64,000 nucleotides of DNA from the sequence record MZ475893.1; one strand, written 5' to 3'. This document shows, one piece after another, positions 10,887-17,825 of this stretch. A program made the position numbers and the translations under genes. Under the pieces are notes generated by a model. It worked only from the letters and a program-made list of their open reading frames with translations, was not told the DNA's origin and did not search any database. Numbering within the stretch: the first letter of the stretch is position 1; the number at the start of each line of letters is the position of its first letter.

Positions 10887-12908
10887 TTAGCCAAATACAA
10901 TCTCAGTGATTGCAAGATACGTCACATCGTTTGAGTCGCCACGGTCACCAGAACCGTAGGCCATCAACCAAATCTCTTCACCTGCAGGGATGTTAGTGTC
11001 GAATGTGATACGTTGCAGAACGTTAGCGCTTGAGTAAACACGCTGCGCTGCACCAGCACCTGCATAACGTTCGTAGATGGACATGTCGTGCCAGCTACCG
11101 TTATTACCATCAAACACCCAATCAAATGTGATTCGCTTGATAGGTCGAGTGAAGAAGTTATTCCACTTGAACCAACCATTCGAGCCACCCCAGAAGTTCA
11201 TATAGCTGCCGTCCCAAACTTTCAGGTTCTCAATGCCACCGCTGACTGTACGACCGCCAGTCTGTGTGAATGCATAGCAGTACCATGGGAATGGATCTGA
11301 ATCAGGCGGTTGTGAGTTACCACCAGCAACTGTGATGCAGCGATACGGAACTGTGAAGTCTCTGACGTTAATGTGCGGAGGCTGAATCGGACAGTACACA
11401 TAGTAAGACCAGTCACACCCGATAGGTCCTGTAACGCGCACTGTGATTTCAGAACGCAGGACATGCTCAGGGTATTTCCAGAACTCAAGTGTACCGACAG
11501 CGCCTGCTACGACAATAGACGTATCAAGCAGATTCATATCACGGTCAAACACCTCGAACTTGGTATCGAATGAGTTAGCAACGCATACGACCAGCTCTGC
11601 TCGGATATCTGTCTGTGTGCCTAACGCAAAATTATCTTCTGTGGTTGGATGACCGGCAGAGTAAACGCTGTAGCTCTGGCACGGATGCATGAACTCACGC
11701 GCACCACGCTCCGAAGGACAATAAAGGCTGTAGAAGAAGCTGTCAAGTGACTCAGCGTTTCCAAAGTCTTTAGATACCACGCGCACCATAATGTCACACG
11801 CGATGTTCTTAGGGTCAAAGTAGAAATACAGATAACCCTCAAGTGTCTTCGCATCAAGCGTTGTTGCAATACGTCTACCGTTTTGATACACCTCAATGAA
11901 GTCGAGCGTTTCCCATGAGGTATAATCAAGGTACATCCAGCCTGCTGTCCAGCCCACAAAGTGATAATACTCGAACGCATTAGCATTCTGAATACGCTCT
12001 GCAATAGGCCACACTGAGGCATGACACGGAGCTGGGAAGACTGGCGTGCCGATATAGTCAGGGTTGATAACGTCAGGGTAATTGATAACGTCATACGCGG
12101 CTTGACTGTCGAGCGCTAACCCACCACGGTCAGAAGGTGCAGAAAGCAGAGGAGGATAAACCATCATGCTCCAGCCGTAACCTTGAGTTGTGCGCACACG
12201 TATCATGATACGCATATCGGCAGCGTCAGGGTCAAACTGGAACTTGATGCGAGAACGTCCTGTTACTTTACCGCAAGATGAAGCTACGCGCACGCCCATG
12301 TGATAGACGTCAATGCTTGCACCAGCAGGAGCATACGAAGCAAAGTTAACCTCGACATAACCTTCAGTTGCAGGCAGAGCGTAGATCGTTTCAGTGATAA
12401 CAGCACCACGACCGTGAGTAGATGCATAAGGAACGTTGGGGTTAGCATACGTGCCCAGACCTGCTCTCGATGCTACGCCTACAGGGTCATAAGACTCAAG
12501 CGTCTTGATGCCTGGGCGATTGATACTGCGACCAGTTGGCGGTGCTGACGAGTTGACGACACCGAAGCCTGTACGACCCGCATCAGGCAAGTCAAAGCCT
12601 ATTGGATAGCCACCAAGAATCGTATAGCTCTCACGACCACCACTGCCTATACCGTTACCGGAGCCTTTGGTTGTTGACGTAGGGCCACCGCCACATGCAC
12701 CTGTTTCAAGATTCGAACAGGGATCATCATACGTAGGGTCAAACGTGTCATCGATTAAATGCCAGCGCTTGCCCCACTGATTACGCACGCTGAACTTCTC
12801 AGGGGTTAGAGGAGTCCAGTCACCTTCCTTGGTGCGAACGTACATGGGCGTATCGACACAATCAAGCCAACCGTTATTCGCAGCATTACGAACGCGAAAA
12901 CGTGACAT
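10887..12908 (-). CDS. Fibre-associated structural protein with three tandem beta-sandwich repeats
   Basis: Three ~100-aa units of pattern G.V...Y.SY....I.VY..G.R.A........F..DP....I.VRV.....W...YCP. Confidence 0.75.
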   Translation of the reverse strand: MSRFRVRNAANNGWLDCVDTPMYVRTKEGDWTPLTPEKFSVRNQWGKRWHLIDDTFDPTYDDPCSNLETGACGGGPTSTTKGSGNGIGSGGRESYTILGGYPIGFDLPDAGRTGFGVVNSSAPPTGRSINRPGIKTLESYDPVGVASRAGLGTYANPNVPYASTHGRGAVITETIYALPATEGYVEVNFASYAPAGASIDVYHMGVRVASSCGKVTGRSRIKFQFDPDAADMRIMIRVRTTQGYGWSMMVYPPLLSAPSDRGGLALDSQAAYDVINYPDVINPDYIGTPVFPAPCHASVWPIAERIQNANAFEYYHFVGWTAGWMYLDYTSWETLDFIEVYQNGRRIATTLDAKTLEGYLYFYFDPKNIACDIMVRVVSKDFGNAESLDSFFYSLYCPSERGAREFMHPCQSYSVYSAGHPTTEDNFALGTQTDIRAELVVCVANSFDTKFEVFDRDMNLLDTSIVVAGAVGTLEFWKYPEHVLRSEITVRVTGPIGCDWSYYVYCPIQPPHINVRDFTVPYRCITVAGGNSQPPDSDPFPWYCYAFTQTGGRTVSGGIENLKVWDGSYMNFWGGSNGWFKWNNFFTRPIKRITFDWVFDGNNGSWHDMSIYERYAGAGAAQRVYSSANVLQRITFDTNIPAGEEIWLMAYGSGDRGDSNDVTYLAITEIVFG

Positions 12909-12919
12909 GTACTATCTCC

Positions 12920-13411
12920 TTACGGTCTTACCCAGATAGCGCCTGCTGGAACTTCTTGGTCTTGAGCAGGGTCAGTATCTTGTACGAAGACAGCCACAAC
13001 ACCTGGGTTTCCAGGAGCACCAGTAGGGCCTGTAGCGCCAGTAGGACCTGCTGGACCACGAATACCTACATAGCCTTGCTTGCCTGGTAGACCATCGATA
13101 CCACGAGGACCAACACAGCCGTCAGTACCGCGTTTACCGTCAGAACCCATCAGGCCGTCGATACCATCACGACCAGAAGCACCAACGCCACCTTCAGGGC
13201 CGTAGCCGATGCTGTAGATAGTAGGCAGGCCAGAGATAGCGAGCTTTCCGATACTCGGAATATTGATAGACAGCACACCTGTCAGTTGATCGAAGGCGCC
13301 TTGTAGCGTTGTTTCATCTTCGGCAACATCAACAGACACACCGCCTTGAGTTGCTACTACCTTACCAGACGCATTCGTCTTGAGTAGCGATATATCAACC
13401 TTTTCTACCAC
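12920..13411 (-). CDS. Collagen-like fibre protein
   Basis: G-X-Y run; GTG start with GGAG RBS; C-terminal VFVQDTDP...GAIWVRP. Confidence 0.8.
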   Translation of the reverse strand: MVEKVDISLLKTNASGKVVATQGGVSVDVAEDETTLQGAFDQLTGVLSINIPSIGKLAISGLPTIYSIGYGPEGGVGASGRDGIDGLMGSDGKRGTDGCVGPRGIDGLPGKQGYVGIRGPAGPTGATGPTGAPGNPGVVAVFVQDTDPAQDQEVPAGAIWVRP

Positions 13412-13420
13412 GAGAACTCC

Positions 13421-14053
13421 TTATGGCCATGTGGTGCCTTGATCTTTAGTAGGGTCGACCCAGAGCGTGCCGGCGGCTACAGCTCCTGGCTGGGTAGCGC
13501 TAACGATAATTGCAAGACGACCGGAAGGACCTGCAGGACCAGTTGGGCCAGTAGGACCAGTACCACCAGTAGAGCCAGTAGGACCAGTACCACCGCGAGC
13601 ACCAGTAGGTCCAGTCGGCCCCATAGGTCCTTCACGGCCTTCTCTGCCCGTAGGCCCAACATTACCGTCACGGCCATCACGACCATCCGGGCCTGGTATG
13701 CCTTGCTCGCCATCTGGACCAACAGGGCCTGTACAGCCTGGACCGCCCGTTGCACCATCACGACCATCACGACCGTCTTTTCCGTCTGCACCTGTTTCAC
13801 CTTTCTGACCTGTACGACCTGCTGGAATATCAGACGCAGTTGGGAAACCTGAGACTTTGAGACTACTGCCGTTAGCAAAGCGCAGAGTTAACACGCCCGC
13901 AGTAGCGTCATACGAGGAATCTGACGTGACTTCTGATGGAGCTTCGGACTCCGCGCTGTTAACAACAAGTGTACCGCCAGATGCTCGGACAGGTGTCGCA
14001 ACAGAGCTTACGCCCGCAGCGATTAAACTTGTTTTTACCTTTATCAAACTCAT
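13421..14053 (-). CDS. Collagen-like fibre protein
   Basis: G-X-Y run of ~100 aa; C-terminal VSATQPG...GTLWVDP. Confidence 0.85.
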
Positions 14054-15489
14054 TACGTCTTCTCCGCCTGAGCAGTCATATCCGTGTTATGAGCCAGAAC
14101 ATCCCCAACGAAATAGCAGTCGAAAGGTTCAACGTCTATGTCTACGGTATTAACGAGTTGGTCTATACGACGACATTCGTATACAGACACAGGACCTTTA
14201 CGTCCTCTGACTTGCATTCCTTGCTTAACTTCACGAGCAGGAACATAGCGCCATTGCTTATCATCGTAGATCAGCACAGGATGTTCGTGCGTAAACTTCT
14301 GTCCGTTAATGACGAAGTAGTGATCTTCCTGACCGTATTTGAGTGCTCGAACAGCAGCATAGACATTCTTACCTTTCAGACTTGGTGAGGACCATTTACG
14401 GAACTCTTTAGGCTGATTGGAGAACGATGCAAGCATATCACCTACAGACAAACGCTCAACAGGCACAGAGCCTGCGATTGTATGCACAGTAGAGCCGAAC
14501 ACGATACAGCCAGATGTTTTACTCACAGGGTTACGTGCAACTACGGTCAGAGCAGACTTCACTGTGACTGTAGGTCTGGATGGCTGCCCCATGTCTGTTA
14601 CTAAACAACTGATGGTGCCTCTGATTGTACGATCAGCACCGAGACCAAGACGCAGATAGAAGTTAACTATGCAGGTGTTAGTCTCTATGGCGTCAAGGTT
14701 AACGCCCTCAGTTGTTGTGATTGTCCACTTGTACTTGTATGGACCCACACCGCCACGCGCATTGACAGGCAGATAAGCAAGCGAGGTGAATACGTCAGAC
14801 CCTTGTACTGTGCGCGTGCCTACCATGTACAGACTAGACACAGAAGCAACAAGTGGGCTGATAGTAGGAAGAGGAGGTGCTGGCGATACGTTAGCAGTCG
14901 GGTACAGCCACACGAACACGTTAGATGCAGTGGGTTGCACATTAGACAGCACAGCAGTTTCGATAGGCGCAGGACCTGTAGGACCCGTTGCACCTGCAAT
15001 ACAGCTTGGACCGTCATTGCCTCGTGGGCCGAGTATGCCAGTAGGACCCGTTGGACCGATTGGTCCTGTAGGTCCGTCTTTACCGTCAGGACCCGTGTCA
15101 CCGTCAGGACCAGTAGCGCCGTCACGACCAGGTTCACCCGCAGTGCCGTTAAGACCTCTAGCACCAGGGAGACCACCACAGCCGTCAGCACCAGTAGAGC
15201 CATCACGTCCATCACGACCGTCACGACCAGCAGCGCCTGGCGCACCTCTCTTACCTTGCTTACCTGAACCAAACATTGCACTCGTAGGCAGGCCGGGGAT
15301 ATTAACTAAATCCCCATTCTGTTTGATGAGTACGAGCACGCCGTTCTTACTGTCAAACTTTACGCTTGCGATCTGTGTCGTTGTCAACACATCGGAGGAT
15401 TCGAATTGAATACCACCAGCAACAGCAACAACGGATTTACCTTCATCGTTGCCTGTTGTCTCGATTTGCGAAAGTTTTAAGTCTGTCAT
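14053..15489 (-). CDS. Collagen-like fibre protein with C-terminal Hint (intein-like) domain
   Basis: G-X-Y run, Ig-like beta domain, then CIVFGSTV...FTHEHP...[11 protein letters not shown]. Confidence 0.85.
14086..14508 (-). other. Hint autoprocessing domain (mini-intein or BIL type), 141 aa
   Basis: Block A starts at Cys (G|CIVFGSTV); block B TxxH (THEH); block [19 protein letters not shown] with +1 Thr; no endonuclease insert. Confidence 0.8.
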
Positions 15490-17825
15490 TTAGGCTCGAC
15501 CTTAATGCACAAGTTACCAATCAGCTTCGAACCGTAGCTCGTGATTTGGGCATTACTGATACGCACCTTAGCGACAATATCAATAAAGCCTTGAGGTTGG
15601 TTCTCGGCTAACACAACAAGCATCTGGGTGATACTGACATTCGAATATGCGATGATCTCGGTCAGGTTTTCTGTAGAATCAACAACGTTGAAACCACTGC
15701 TACCCGTACCTTTAAGACCACGACCATATTCAGCCTCAGCAAGGCCAGGCGTCTTGTACGATAGAACGTACTCGATATGCTCTTTGCCGCTGGTGGCCTT
15801 GAAGCCAGGACCCAATTGACACTGGAAGTCTGCAACACAGGTAAGCATAACACCTTTCTTGAACTCGATGCGCTGCGTAATCGTCAGCTCCTCTGAGTCC
15901 TCAACATCTTGGTGGATGTTGTACATGTTCTTAGGGTCAGCTTCTTCTGCGAGCGCTTGCGTGTTGCTGATGGTGATGTTCGGCCACTCACCACTGATCT
16001 TAATGCCTTCACCCTGAATGATTTCAGGAACGAACATAGGCACATCAATCGGCGAGAGTCCCTGACGCTTGAACATGAAGCCTGTTGGCGTAGGGATAAC
16101 ATCAATGATAACGCCATCAACAGAACTGTCTTTCGAGCCTACAGCCATCACGTTTTCGAAGATGGTGATTTCCACCAGCGTGTCTGCTGGGATAGGCGAT
16201 ACAGTCTGCAACGAGTTACCAACAACGGTGAAGTCAGAAGGATGAATCGTCAGACCACCCATCGTTGCAACAACGTGCGCTTTGTTCAGTGGGCTAGTCG
16301 GAAGAATGTATGTATCAGCATCATAAGGAAGGCGATACTGAGAAACACGCATACGAGTAGACCAGTTGGCGCGTTCTTCATAGCGGGCAACATAGAAAGA
16401 ATATTTCTGGCCAGAAGGAATTGCCTGCGTTAGCGTAATCTTATTGCCGTTGTTGATCTTGTAGACTGTGGAGGGCTGCCACGTTGAGCCTACAACACAG
16501 AAGACCATATCAGCGCTTTCGATTACTTGACTACCCAGAGAGAACTGAGTTGTCTGACCGTCACCTACACCTTCGTACAGCTCAAACAGAACGACATGGC
16601 CTTGAGATGGTTCGATACGGAACTGTCTCAGGTCAAGCAGCATCTGTTGTTCAGGGTATGACGAGAGCAGCAACTGATCTTCCTGAACGGAGTATGCAGT
16701 ACGCGGCTGGAGAACGCCTGACGTGCCTACAAACAAATCAGTAGAGCTATCAAGAATTTCGGTCAGTTGGTAACGCAGAGCATCAGGAGTAGCTGTGGTC
16801 ACAACAGAACTAAACAGCATCTTGCCTGGAGGTACAAACAGGCTTGCAGTCGTCTGACGTGAACCACCAACAGGACCCCAATACGGTTCGTTGTCTGCAC
16901 CACGCATCAATCCCCAAGTGCTTGGCACATCGTTGTTAGCAGGCCACGGGATGCCAGCGCTCGGCGTAGTTGGGTTAGTGATTCGACGCCACACAGCGAT
17001 AGACGTTTGCGCAGATACGAATGGGATAGCGCTGTCCAAGTTGACAAGCTGCTGGTTGGTGTATTTGAAGTGACGACAAGCGCCTGCACCAGTACCTGCA
17101 ATAGTCTGCACGAGGACGGTCTCACCTTCTTTGAGAGAAGTAAGACTTGGAATCTTAAACGTGTTAGCGTTAATGAAACCAGTAGAGGTAATCTGGCCGC
17201 TGAACACACGGTCGTGCTCGCTGAAAGCCCAATAGTAAGAGCCGGCACCGTAGCGCGAAGCCTGACCAGGAGACTTAGAGCCATCGCTATTGATATGCAT
17301 GTCCAGCACAGACACAACGTTGAACACGTTATCGTTCAAGCTAGGCAGATTCTCCAGCGTTGCTACACTCGGGATGGACGTGTAATCCGCCATCTCAACA
17401 GCAAGAATCTTCTGGACGTCCTGCGTCAAATGGATGAGCAAGCTAACGCGAGACACAGAATTTGGAACTGCAATGATAGGCTCTTGCAGAACAACGTGAC
17501 CGAAAGGACGGTTGTCTTTGAGCATGATCATCAACTCACCCACACGCTTCAATTGCTCACCAGCGGCGTAGGTCAGTTTTATATCAAAGATAAAGCGTGC
17601 GCTATTCTCAGAGAGAACCTGTACATAGGACAGGGCGCCGGAAGCAAGCTCGTTGCCAAGTAACTGCTCTGGAACCTCAGATGGGTTAGAGCCGATATAG
17701 TCACCTGCTTTGAACGAAACTGGCTGCACAGCAATGCCGCCTGCGTTAGCGTTCGCAACGGCCTGTTCTCCCTGAGGCGTTAAACGCAGAGCGTCAACGT
17801 AGATAGATTCATCAGCGGCCATCAA
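15486..17825 (-). CDS. Baseplate-attached tail fibre / tail-collar fibre protein
   Basis: N-terminal [12 protein letters not shown]...FKAGD resembles the tail-collar fibre N-terminal domain (DUF3751-like); repeated GDG.TT.F.L and V.Q.P..Y motifs. Confidence 0.7.

Follow-up and report, generated by a model that had tools for sequence, protein, structure and literature searches.

The 478-residue collagen-like fibre protein encoded in a 64,000-nucleotide stretch of sequence record MZ475893.1 (the window, meaning the whole stretch that was analysed) ends in a domain of the Hint superfamily, followed by a tail of only 10 residues. An initial annotation made from the letters alone had described positions 14053-14508 as a Hint domain closing a collagen fibre with a 10-residue C-flank, and we found that this interval comprises exactly the Hint, the tail and the stop codon (Table 1). 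The domain is of a known kind, a bacterial intein-like (BIL) Hint; what is new is its systematic place at the C-termini of fibre proteins, a tryptophan-rich insert, and a short tail that bears a lysine and is a putative acceptor. Judging from the conservation pattern and the modelled fold, we lean, without great confidence, towards a fixed, functional Hint of the BIL A-type/PT-HINT-like kind with a short acceptor tail, which would be self-excising and not a mobile intein.

To place the domain, structure and profile comparisons were combined. An AlphaFold2 model of the Hint, based on an alignment of 19 orthologues, is all-beta with a mean predicted local distance difference test score (pLDDT) of 92.4. 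Foldseek comparison of the model with the PDB returned 43 matches at E ≤ 1e-3, every one of which is a BIL, Hedgehog or intein structure, in the order Clostridium thermocellum BIL 2lwy (template modelling (TM) scores 0.71/0.78), Tetrahymena BUBL1 BIL2 6y75/6tmm (0.73), Hedgehog (0.70) and about 40 inteins. A Hint-only profile of 22 diverse members searched against the PDB reached 2lwy at E 1e-18, BIL2 at 1e-14 and the Pho RadA intein at 1.6e-11, and in HMMER alignments C328, T400 and H403 fell in the same blocks of 2lwy. Pfam scans of 21 orthologues matched Hint_2 in 18 and PT-HINT in 12, while PT-HINT was also matched by 32 of 59 distant relatives, with a best E value of 6.6e-34. The search with hidden Markov models (HMMs) of Hint, PT-HINT and BIL families that the initial annotation had proposed thus succeeded at the level of the profile and fell short for the single protein, which remained under the Pfam gathering scores (Hint_2, 21.5 bits compared with 28.4; PT-HINT, 16.9 compared with 27.7) and was borderline in a single-sequence phmmer search of the PDB (E 0.017). 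Homology is established transitively, because the profile reaches 2lwy at E 1e-18 and the relatives reach PT-HINT at 6.6e-34. We confirm that the 478-residue protein ends in a Hint-superfamily domain. The Pfam scan of the protein found no endonuclease family, and the continuous all-beta model of 141 residues leaves no room for one, in agreement with the initial annotation that a homing endonuclease is lacking; Peptidase_S74 gave no Pfam match in the protein at E ≤ 1.

We examined conservation in 21 orthologues, all of 476-481 residues and with overall identity down to 45%. Residues G327, C328, T400-H-E-H-P404, H467, N468, D470, E476 and K477 were invariant. The residues named in the initial annotation (G327/C328, the THEH motif T400-H403, H467-N468 and T469) are all present in a domain of the expected 141 residues. 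All canonical splicing residues are in place in the window protein, but the emphasis that the initial annotation put on them is not supported as it stands. The +1 threonine, found there and in 20 of 21 aligned orthologues, is not conserved even at this level: further orthologues carry Ser (P0021), Ala (P0022 and P0023), Met (P0024) or, in the cultured Yersinia phage fHe-Yen9-02, Val at this position. The conserved feature beyond the +1 residue is instead a lysine in the tail, which the initial annotation had missed.

The Hint appears to be a permanent part of this protein. Mean pairwise identity was 0.68 for the Hint, which is as well conserved as the other parts (0.59-0.70), and comparison with phage pEa_SNUABM_7 showed 9 nucleotide differences and 1 amino-acid difference in the Hint, a ratio of non-synonymous to synonymous substitution rates (dN/dS) of 0.035. 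As judged from these substitutions, the Hint domain is under purifying selection. A search of 5.8 billion proteins found no Hint-less allele among 16 homologues of the adjoining immunoglobulin (Ig)-like domain; all 16 are 477-480 residues long and thus all carry the Hint, which is kept in phages of Erwinia, Yersinia and Alcaligenes and in phages known from metagenomes. Selection and the lack of an empty allele among these homologues bear out the earlier suspicion that this is not a typical phage intein.

A phmmer search with a 152-residue piece against 1.84 billion cluster representatives yielded 232 proteins (50%-identity clusters) at E ≤ 1e-3, and the best 150 of the 232 were analysed, with the two closest (P0021 and P0022) excluded and P0023 and P0024 counted among the 100 terminal-Hint relatives. 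In these 100 of the best 150 relatives the Hint lies at the extreme C-terminus, with 1-19 residues past His-Asn. Cys1 was present in 52 of 52 terminal-Hint relatives with an aligned N-junction; the -1 residue was Gly in 37 of the 52, and at least three Gly occurred among the six preceding residues in 30. The +1 position, by comparison, held Ser or Thr in only 12 of the 100 and neither in the other 88. The N-terminal parts resemble those of fibre or decoration proteins, with collagen in 14 of 59 and tail-collar fibre N-domain, Ig, PKD, BACON, Calx-beta and fibronectin domains in others. By sequence comparison, the same Hint subfamily ends dozens of unrelated fibre proteins; the arrangement was seen in about 100 phage fibre proteins that are not related to one another.

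Wherever the genomic surroundings of a relative were fetched, the gene lay in a phage tail module. One such module, from a jumbo phage and syntenic with the window, carries two Hint-ending proteins. Phage NCTB (LT598654) carries three in its tail module, deposited as "contains intein domain"; that such tail proteins contain an intein-like domain has thus already been noticed at the level of annotation. A P2/HP1-like prophage (L003:8001-10289, GCA_023284005.1) encodes a fibre with a Phage_tail_fib N-domain that ends in a Hint and a Lys tail and occupies the tail-fibre slot, directly after the Baseplate_J and Tail_P2_I genes, which indicates that the arrangement is not restricted to jumbo phages. 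A literature search on Hint or intein-like domains of tail fibres returned nothing relevant and no paper that analyses them; a jumbo-phage overview treats S74 and not Hint on fibres (PMC7824862), and the PaBG paper mentions inteins in the terminase only.

The terminal class also differs in length, with a median domain of 150 residues compared with 132 in relatives with long C-flanks. It stems from some 20 extra residues inserted behind block A (about residues 355-375 of the window protein), a segment rich in aromatic residues and Trp with conserved positions of both kinds. Among the window's orthologues, Q359, P360, K361, F363 and R364 never vary and W366 hardly does. Neither 2lwy nor classical PT-HINT members have a counterpart of this insert, which could be a docking site for the tail.

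Lysine is the most consistent property of the tails. It was found in 97 of the 100 short tails, compared with 24.5 expected from composition, and the 749 tail residues include 109 Lys and 13 Arg (binomial p 3e-32). A Lys among the last three residues occurred in 67 of 100 terminal-class proteins, compared with 4 of 44 long-flank relatives (Fisher p 4e-11) and 9 of 60 window open reading frames (ORFs). No tail of the 100 was shorter than 1 or longer than 19 residues, and of the six members with a one-residue tail, the five that were inspected (P0042, P0057, P0084, P0127 and P0160) end in a lone Lys. Among the long-flank relatives, tandem arrays with Lys-Gly(1-4) linkers included, the +1 residue itself was most often Lys (24 of 44). 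The sole Lys in the tail of the window protein is K477 (codon 14059-14061).

We also considered whether the tail Lys could be a by-product of a ribosome site or of a general C-terminal Lys bias. This was rejected for the family as a whole and stands as a caveat for E476-K477 of the window protein. A purine-rich ribosome site would not be expected to yield eight times as many Lys as Arg, and the Lys is kept where overlap with a downstream site is not possible (a 36-nucleotide gap, a 70-nucleotide gap and a convergent neighbour) as well as inside proteins, in tandem Hint arrays.

In Hint chemistry, a thioester first arises between Cys1 and the -1 carbonyl, inteins pass this to a +1 Cys, Ser or Thr, and Asn cyclisation frees the Hint; type A BILs without a +1 nucleophile cleave, splice or ligate through an amine (PMC4031507). 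Based on the invariant Gly-Cys, the T-x-x-H motif and the fold, we infer that Cys328 would attack the Gly327 carbonyl in an N-S acyl shift to give a glycyl thioester, which a nucleophile in the 10-residue tail of that chain would then resolve. Two acceptors can be proposed in this phage: the hydroxyl of Thr469 would lead by the classical route to a normal peptide bond, and the side-chain amine of Lys477 by the BIL2 route to an isopeptide. Most relatives would have to rely on Lys or on the freed alpha-amine. Cyclisation of Asn468 would release the 141-residue Hint, and the mature fibre would consist of residues 1-327 with the 10-residue peptide on Gly327. Transfer of Gly327 to the tail is suggested because the -1 Gly and both catalytic junctions are conserved and because the tail is never absent and nearly always has a Lys. 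Tail and Asn would both be kept because thioester resolution without an acceptor would be slow hydrolysis, while a Hint without Asn cyclisation would stay tethered through the tail; the Lys tail would secure clean, irreversible resolution. As to its role, the Hint may be a transient C-terminal module in folding or assembly of the distal fibre end that then removes itself without adenosine triphosphate (ATP) or a protease, which by analogy would make it parallel in purpose to the Peptidase_S74 intramolecular chaperones.

The domain reads as BIL-like and not intein-like because it stands at the extreme C-terminus of variable surface proteins and because its +1 residue varies. Non-conserved proteins, mostly secreted or surface ones, carry type A BILs in their variable regions (PMC7765530). 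The C. thermocellum member 2lwy is the best match to the window Hint both in sequence (E 1e-18, end to end) and in fold, and type A BILs share with the phage family Cys1, block B, the terminal His-Asn, a setting in variable non-enzymatic surface proteins and, in 88 of 100 relatives and several orthologues, the lack of a +1 nucleophile (PMC4031507, PMC7765530). Unlike them, the Hints of phage fibres stand at the very C-terminus, where only 1-19 residues follow the Asn, and have the aromatic/Trp insert of about 20 residues and the near-universal tail Lys, and the window protein itself has the +1 Thr469. PT-HINT (PF07591) is the best-matching Pfam family across the relatives, and an RHS protein on locus L007, a classical example, aligns with the family; PT-HINT is defined by a toxin domain after the Hint, whereas only 10 residues follow Asn468 here.

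Several points weigh against self-excision by way of the tail. We found no experimental evidence of processing in the literature for this or any related phage protein, and no peptide-level virion proteomics; the "virion structural protein" labels were carried over by annotation transfer and, because no virion proteomics with peptide coverage was found, cannot be used for or against processing. No precedent was found for a chaperone-like monomeric Hint on a trimeric collagen fibre. For removal alone, a protein ending at the Hint and using simple hydrolysis might suffice. The invariance of E476-K477 is not clean protein-level evidence because these codons overlap the GGAG site of the next gene, the pLDDT of the tail is below 50 at the last residues and so gives no geometric support for Lys477 reaching Cys328, and the 478-residue protein scores under the Pfam thresholds on its own.

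A bolder version of this chemistry, which we hold only tentatively and think rather doubtful, is that the BIL-type Hint acts on phage fibres as an ATP-independent Lys ligase of the ubiquitin-conjugation kind, moving a thioester on the C-terminal Gly to a Lys side chain. On this equally tentative view the normal acceptor would be the Lys of its own tail, giving a branched isopeptide cap, and a Lys of another virion or host-surface protein could serve as well, giving a covalent attachment. In BIL2 a Lys side chain resolves the thioester to an isopeptide without ATP, on the C-flank or on other proteins (PMC8616854), and the suggestion in the initial annotation that the Hint might cap or link the fibre end gains a concrete precedent because BIL2 forms such a Lys isopeptide. 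Tetrahymena thermophila BUBL1 BIL2 (6y75, 6tmm) was the second-best match in both searches (E 1e-14, TM 0.73), and the phage family resembles it in having Lys as a conserved feature of the C-flank and Gly as the usual -1 residue. The two differ in that BIL2 is from a eukaryote and has ubiquitin-like flanks, whereas the window protein has an Ig/cadherin-like domain of a collagen fibre as its N-flank and a peptide of 10 residues as its C-flank; of the BUBL-type N-flank, the -1 Gly alone is in common. BIL2 conjugation is documented, whereas the phage family is known here from sequence and model. The tail Lys might also be supposed to mediate head-to-tail polymerisation or inter-chain cross-linking, an idea rejected on topology, by reasoning only: no polymer is possible because the N-terminal part is no longer joined to its own tail after transfer.

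Of the explanations that compete with a fixed functional Hint, a stranded or domesticated class-1 mini-intein survives best, and we consider it unlikely. The Hint would then be a selfish remnant without an endonuclease that splices through Thr469, ties the 10-residue C-extein on by an ordinary peptide bond and has no function beyond its own removal. Cys1, T-x-x-H, His-Asn and the +1 Thr are all found in the window protein, the Thr recurs in 20 of 21 aligned orthologues, and true inteins were significant in both profile and fold searches; class-1 phage mini-inteins (gp41-1 and the terminase and helicase inteins) are alike in fold, catalytic residues and size. They nevertheless match the window Hint less well than BILs do, and the nearest relatives of the subfamily, which recurs on dozens of unrelated fibres, are BILs and not inteins. 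Unlike such inteins, the window Hint lies outside a conserved enzyme motif, has no intein-less allele among the homologues searched and no endonuclease or remnant of one, and has a +1 residue that varies to Ala, Val or Met among orthologues. One nonsense mutation could also lose an element located 10 residues from the stop codon, yet it is kept under purifying selection.

It is also improbable, in our estimate, that the glycyl thioester is normally passed in trans to a Lys or other nucleophile of a different virion or host-surface molecule, with the tail Lys as only a default acceptor; the fibre would be fixed covalently in this way, much as BIL2 dispenses a ubiquitin-like domain. BIL2 does act on several substrates, joining its N-flank to their Lys with no need of ATP (PMC8616854), a -1 Gly or a poly-Gly linker is common in the family, and the tail fibres of the phage lineage are hair-like and unusually stable (PMC6143709; PMC5259590). 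A built-in Lys in 97 of 100 tails argues instead for an acceptor in cis, the conserved Asn would be needless for pure trans transfer, a partner would have to be assumed, and the N-domain shared by the three paralogues looks like the part that attaches to the virion, with the Hint then lying at the distal tip. The Hedgehog Hog domain is a C-terminal Hint of matching fold (TM 0.70) in which the thioester is resolved by an incoming nucleophile that caps the N-terminal product. Hog differs in its sterol-recognition region and in lacking cleavage at a terminal Asn; in the window protein just 10 residues follow a conserved His-Asn.

We give similarly little credence to a cleavage-only module resembling Peptidase_S74, in which the thioester would be hydrolysed, Hint and tail would depart together or separately, the tail would have no chemical role and its Lys would reflect other constraints, for example the ribosome site of the next gene or stability of the C-terminus. 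Cleavage products do dominate over splicing in type A BILs (PMC4031507), the E-K codons overlap the GGAG site in the window, and phage C-termini are somewhat Lys-rich anyway, as seen in 9 of 60 cases in the window and 5 of 9 in locus L002. These constraints do not account for a Lys-over-Arg bias of about 8 to 1, for Lys where there is no downstream gene and inside tandem arrays, or for the universal Asn and tail of at least one residue. Peptidase_S74 modules are C-terminal and self-removing on trimeric phage fibres (PMC7824862), a likeness that extends to the window Hint insofar as its removal is proposed only; they are unrelated in fold and chemistry, S74 being a Ser-Lys dyad protease. Finally, a Hint fold that stays at the fibre tip as a non-processing knob, for instance to bind a receptor or protein, would fit the "virion structural protein" annotation and the lack of processing data but is very improbable, since the strictly conserved positions are precisely the catalytic ones at the two junctions and the surface is variable, and degenerate Hint folds usually lose Cys1 or Asn.

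To our knowledge, self-cleaving C-terminal fibre modules have so far been known only as Peptidase_S74 chaperones. A thioester-forming Hint, if true, would be a second and chemically different solution and would change the annotation of fibre and decoration proteins; mature fibre proteins would be about 150 residues shorter than predicted and may carry a junction that is not in the genome. The distribution of fibre-terminal Hints among tail genes suggests an undescribed, energy-free trimming or capping of fibre ends. Should the tail Lys be the acceptor, this would be the first viral case of BIL2-type isopeptide formation, and the domain would offer a compact natural tag of about 150 residues for traceless or branched C-terminal protein ligation. 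The Lys-ligase reading, if true, would add a new class of post-translational chemistry to virion assembly across hundreds of phage lineages.

Over the 3 kb that were compared, the window is 100% identical to the Erwinia amylovora jumbo phage pEa_SNUABM_45 (MZ475893), and the gene is also present in eight close relatives. The phage lineage, Snuvirus, is grouped with Y3, Alexandra, AD1 and Yoloswag and has been described as "hairy Myoviridae" with unusually stable hair-like tail fibres (PMC6143709; PMC5259590). Orthologues of the 478-residue protein are annotated as "virion structural protein", "putative tail protein" or "putative tail fiber protein", and its PHROGs match, phrog_38766 "virion structural protein", is its own orthologue group and adds no functional information. 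That the protein is a collagen fibre, as first described, was borne out by a Pfam Collagen match (E 1e-13) and by G-X-Y runs at residues 76-162 and 166-174, with an invariant Cys104 inside the collagen run. The N-terminal domain model has beta strands at 19-64 and a pLDDT of about 72 for residues 40-73. The middle domain is structured over about residues 210-320 (pLDDT 80-92), with weak Ig/cadherin matches and a weak SprB Pfam match, whereas the full-length AlphaFold2 model has pLDDT values below 50 in the collagen part and the tail and is uninformative there. On the minus strand the Cys328 codon occupies 14508-14506, Asn468 ends at 14086 and the TAA stop lies at 14055-14053. The TAATG overlap and the GGAG site imply translational coupling of the fibre gene to the downstream gene. 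A search of the window's ORFs with the family HMM found no second Hint, leaving one Hint ORF only. Gene order around the upstream 779-residue protein is syntenic in all relatives.

Table 1. Positions of the Hint-bearing fibre gene, its parts and neighbouring genes in the window.
Feature	Position	Strand	Remarks
Fibre gene, 478 residues + TAA	14053..15489	minus	Collagen-like fibre protein ending in Hint domain
N-terminal domain, residues 1-73	15271..15489	minus	From alignment with two downstream collagen-like paralogues and from the model
Collagen-like G-X-Y region	14968..15264	minus	29 triplets (76-162), one-triplet break at C163, 3 triplets (166-174)
Linker and middle beta-sandwich (Ig/cadherin-like)	14509..14967	minus	Last residue Gly327 is the N-junction
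Putative N-terminal processing junction Gly327/Cys328	14506..14511	minus	Invariant in 21/21 orthologues
Hint domain, 141 residues, C328-N468, BIL-A/PT-HINT-like, without endonuclease	14086..14508	minus	From Pfam, profile and fold
Block B motif T400-H-E-H403	14281..14292	minus	Invariant in orthologues, as is P404
Terminal His467-Asn468 (block G)	14086..14091	minus	Sole invariant columns in alignments of 59 and 22 divergent members
10-residue C-flank T469-T478	14056..14085	minus	D470, E476 and K477 invariant in orthologues
GGAG Shine-Dalgarno (14062-14065) and TAATG stop/start overlap	14051..14065	minus	GGAG lies within E476/K477 codons
Paralogue 1, 210 residues, without Hint	13421..14053	minus	Common N-domain and collagen run; stops shortly after collagen
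Paralogue 2, 163 residues, without Hint	12920..13411	minus	Common N-domain, shorter collagen run
Upstream 779-residue protein, same tail module	15486..17825	minus	Weak Phage_tail_fib N-terminal match
Neighbouring 673-residue protein, C-terminus without Hint	10887..12908	minus	First ~520 residues orthologous to NCTB and L011 proteins

The fibre gene is the first of three tandem collagen-like genes (478, 210 and 163 residues; 12920-15489, minus strand) that have in common an N-domain of about 73 residues, presumed to be a virion-attachment module, and an invariant collagen Cys. The Ig-like domain and the Hint are found only in the first. The three genes could encode three fibre types or the chains of one heterotrimer. 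Compared with pEa_SNUABM_7 (L001), the collagen run at 14968-15264 has 29 synonymous and 0 non-synonymous differences, a synonymous divergence (dS) of 0.45, while the N-domain has zero differences and the middle and Hint parts have a dS of about 0.09. Silent divergence confined to the collagen repeat in this way suggests recombination or unusual codon turnover.

The neighbouring 673-residue protein matches a 1304-residue protein of NCTB (L008:8308-12219; residues 71-520) and a 961-residue protein of a metagenomic jumbo phage (L011:5001-7883; residues 2-516), both at 36% identity, with E values of 9e-75 and 1e-98, respectively. Both counterparts end in a Hint and a Lys tail, whereas the C-terminus of the Erwinia copy is of another kind and has no Hint, and the three proteins are a natural presence/absence case for the Hint module.

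Other arrangements of the module were seen among the relatives. In one tail cluster (L012:3541-6089) a fibre with a weak Peptidase_S74 match is followed directly by a 362-residue Hint-ending protein (P0033), so that two unrelated C-terminal modules of self-processing type adjoin. In NCTB a free-standing Hint-only ORF of 153 residues (L008:6483-6941), ending His-Asn-Lys-Val-Asp, lies directly after a fibre-Hint gene. The metagenomic proteins P0034, P0064, P0096, P0120, P0143 and P0156 consist of arrays of 2-4 Hint units joined by Lys-Gly(1-4) only, and excision of all the units would leave a short Gly/Lys peptide chain.

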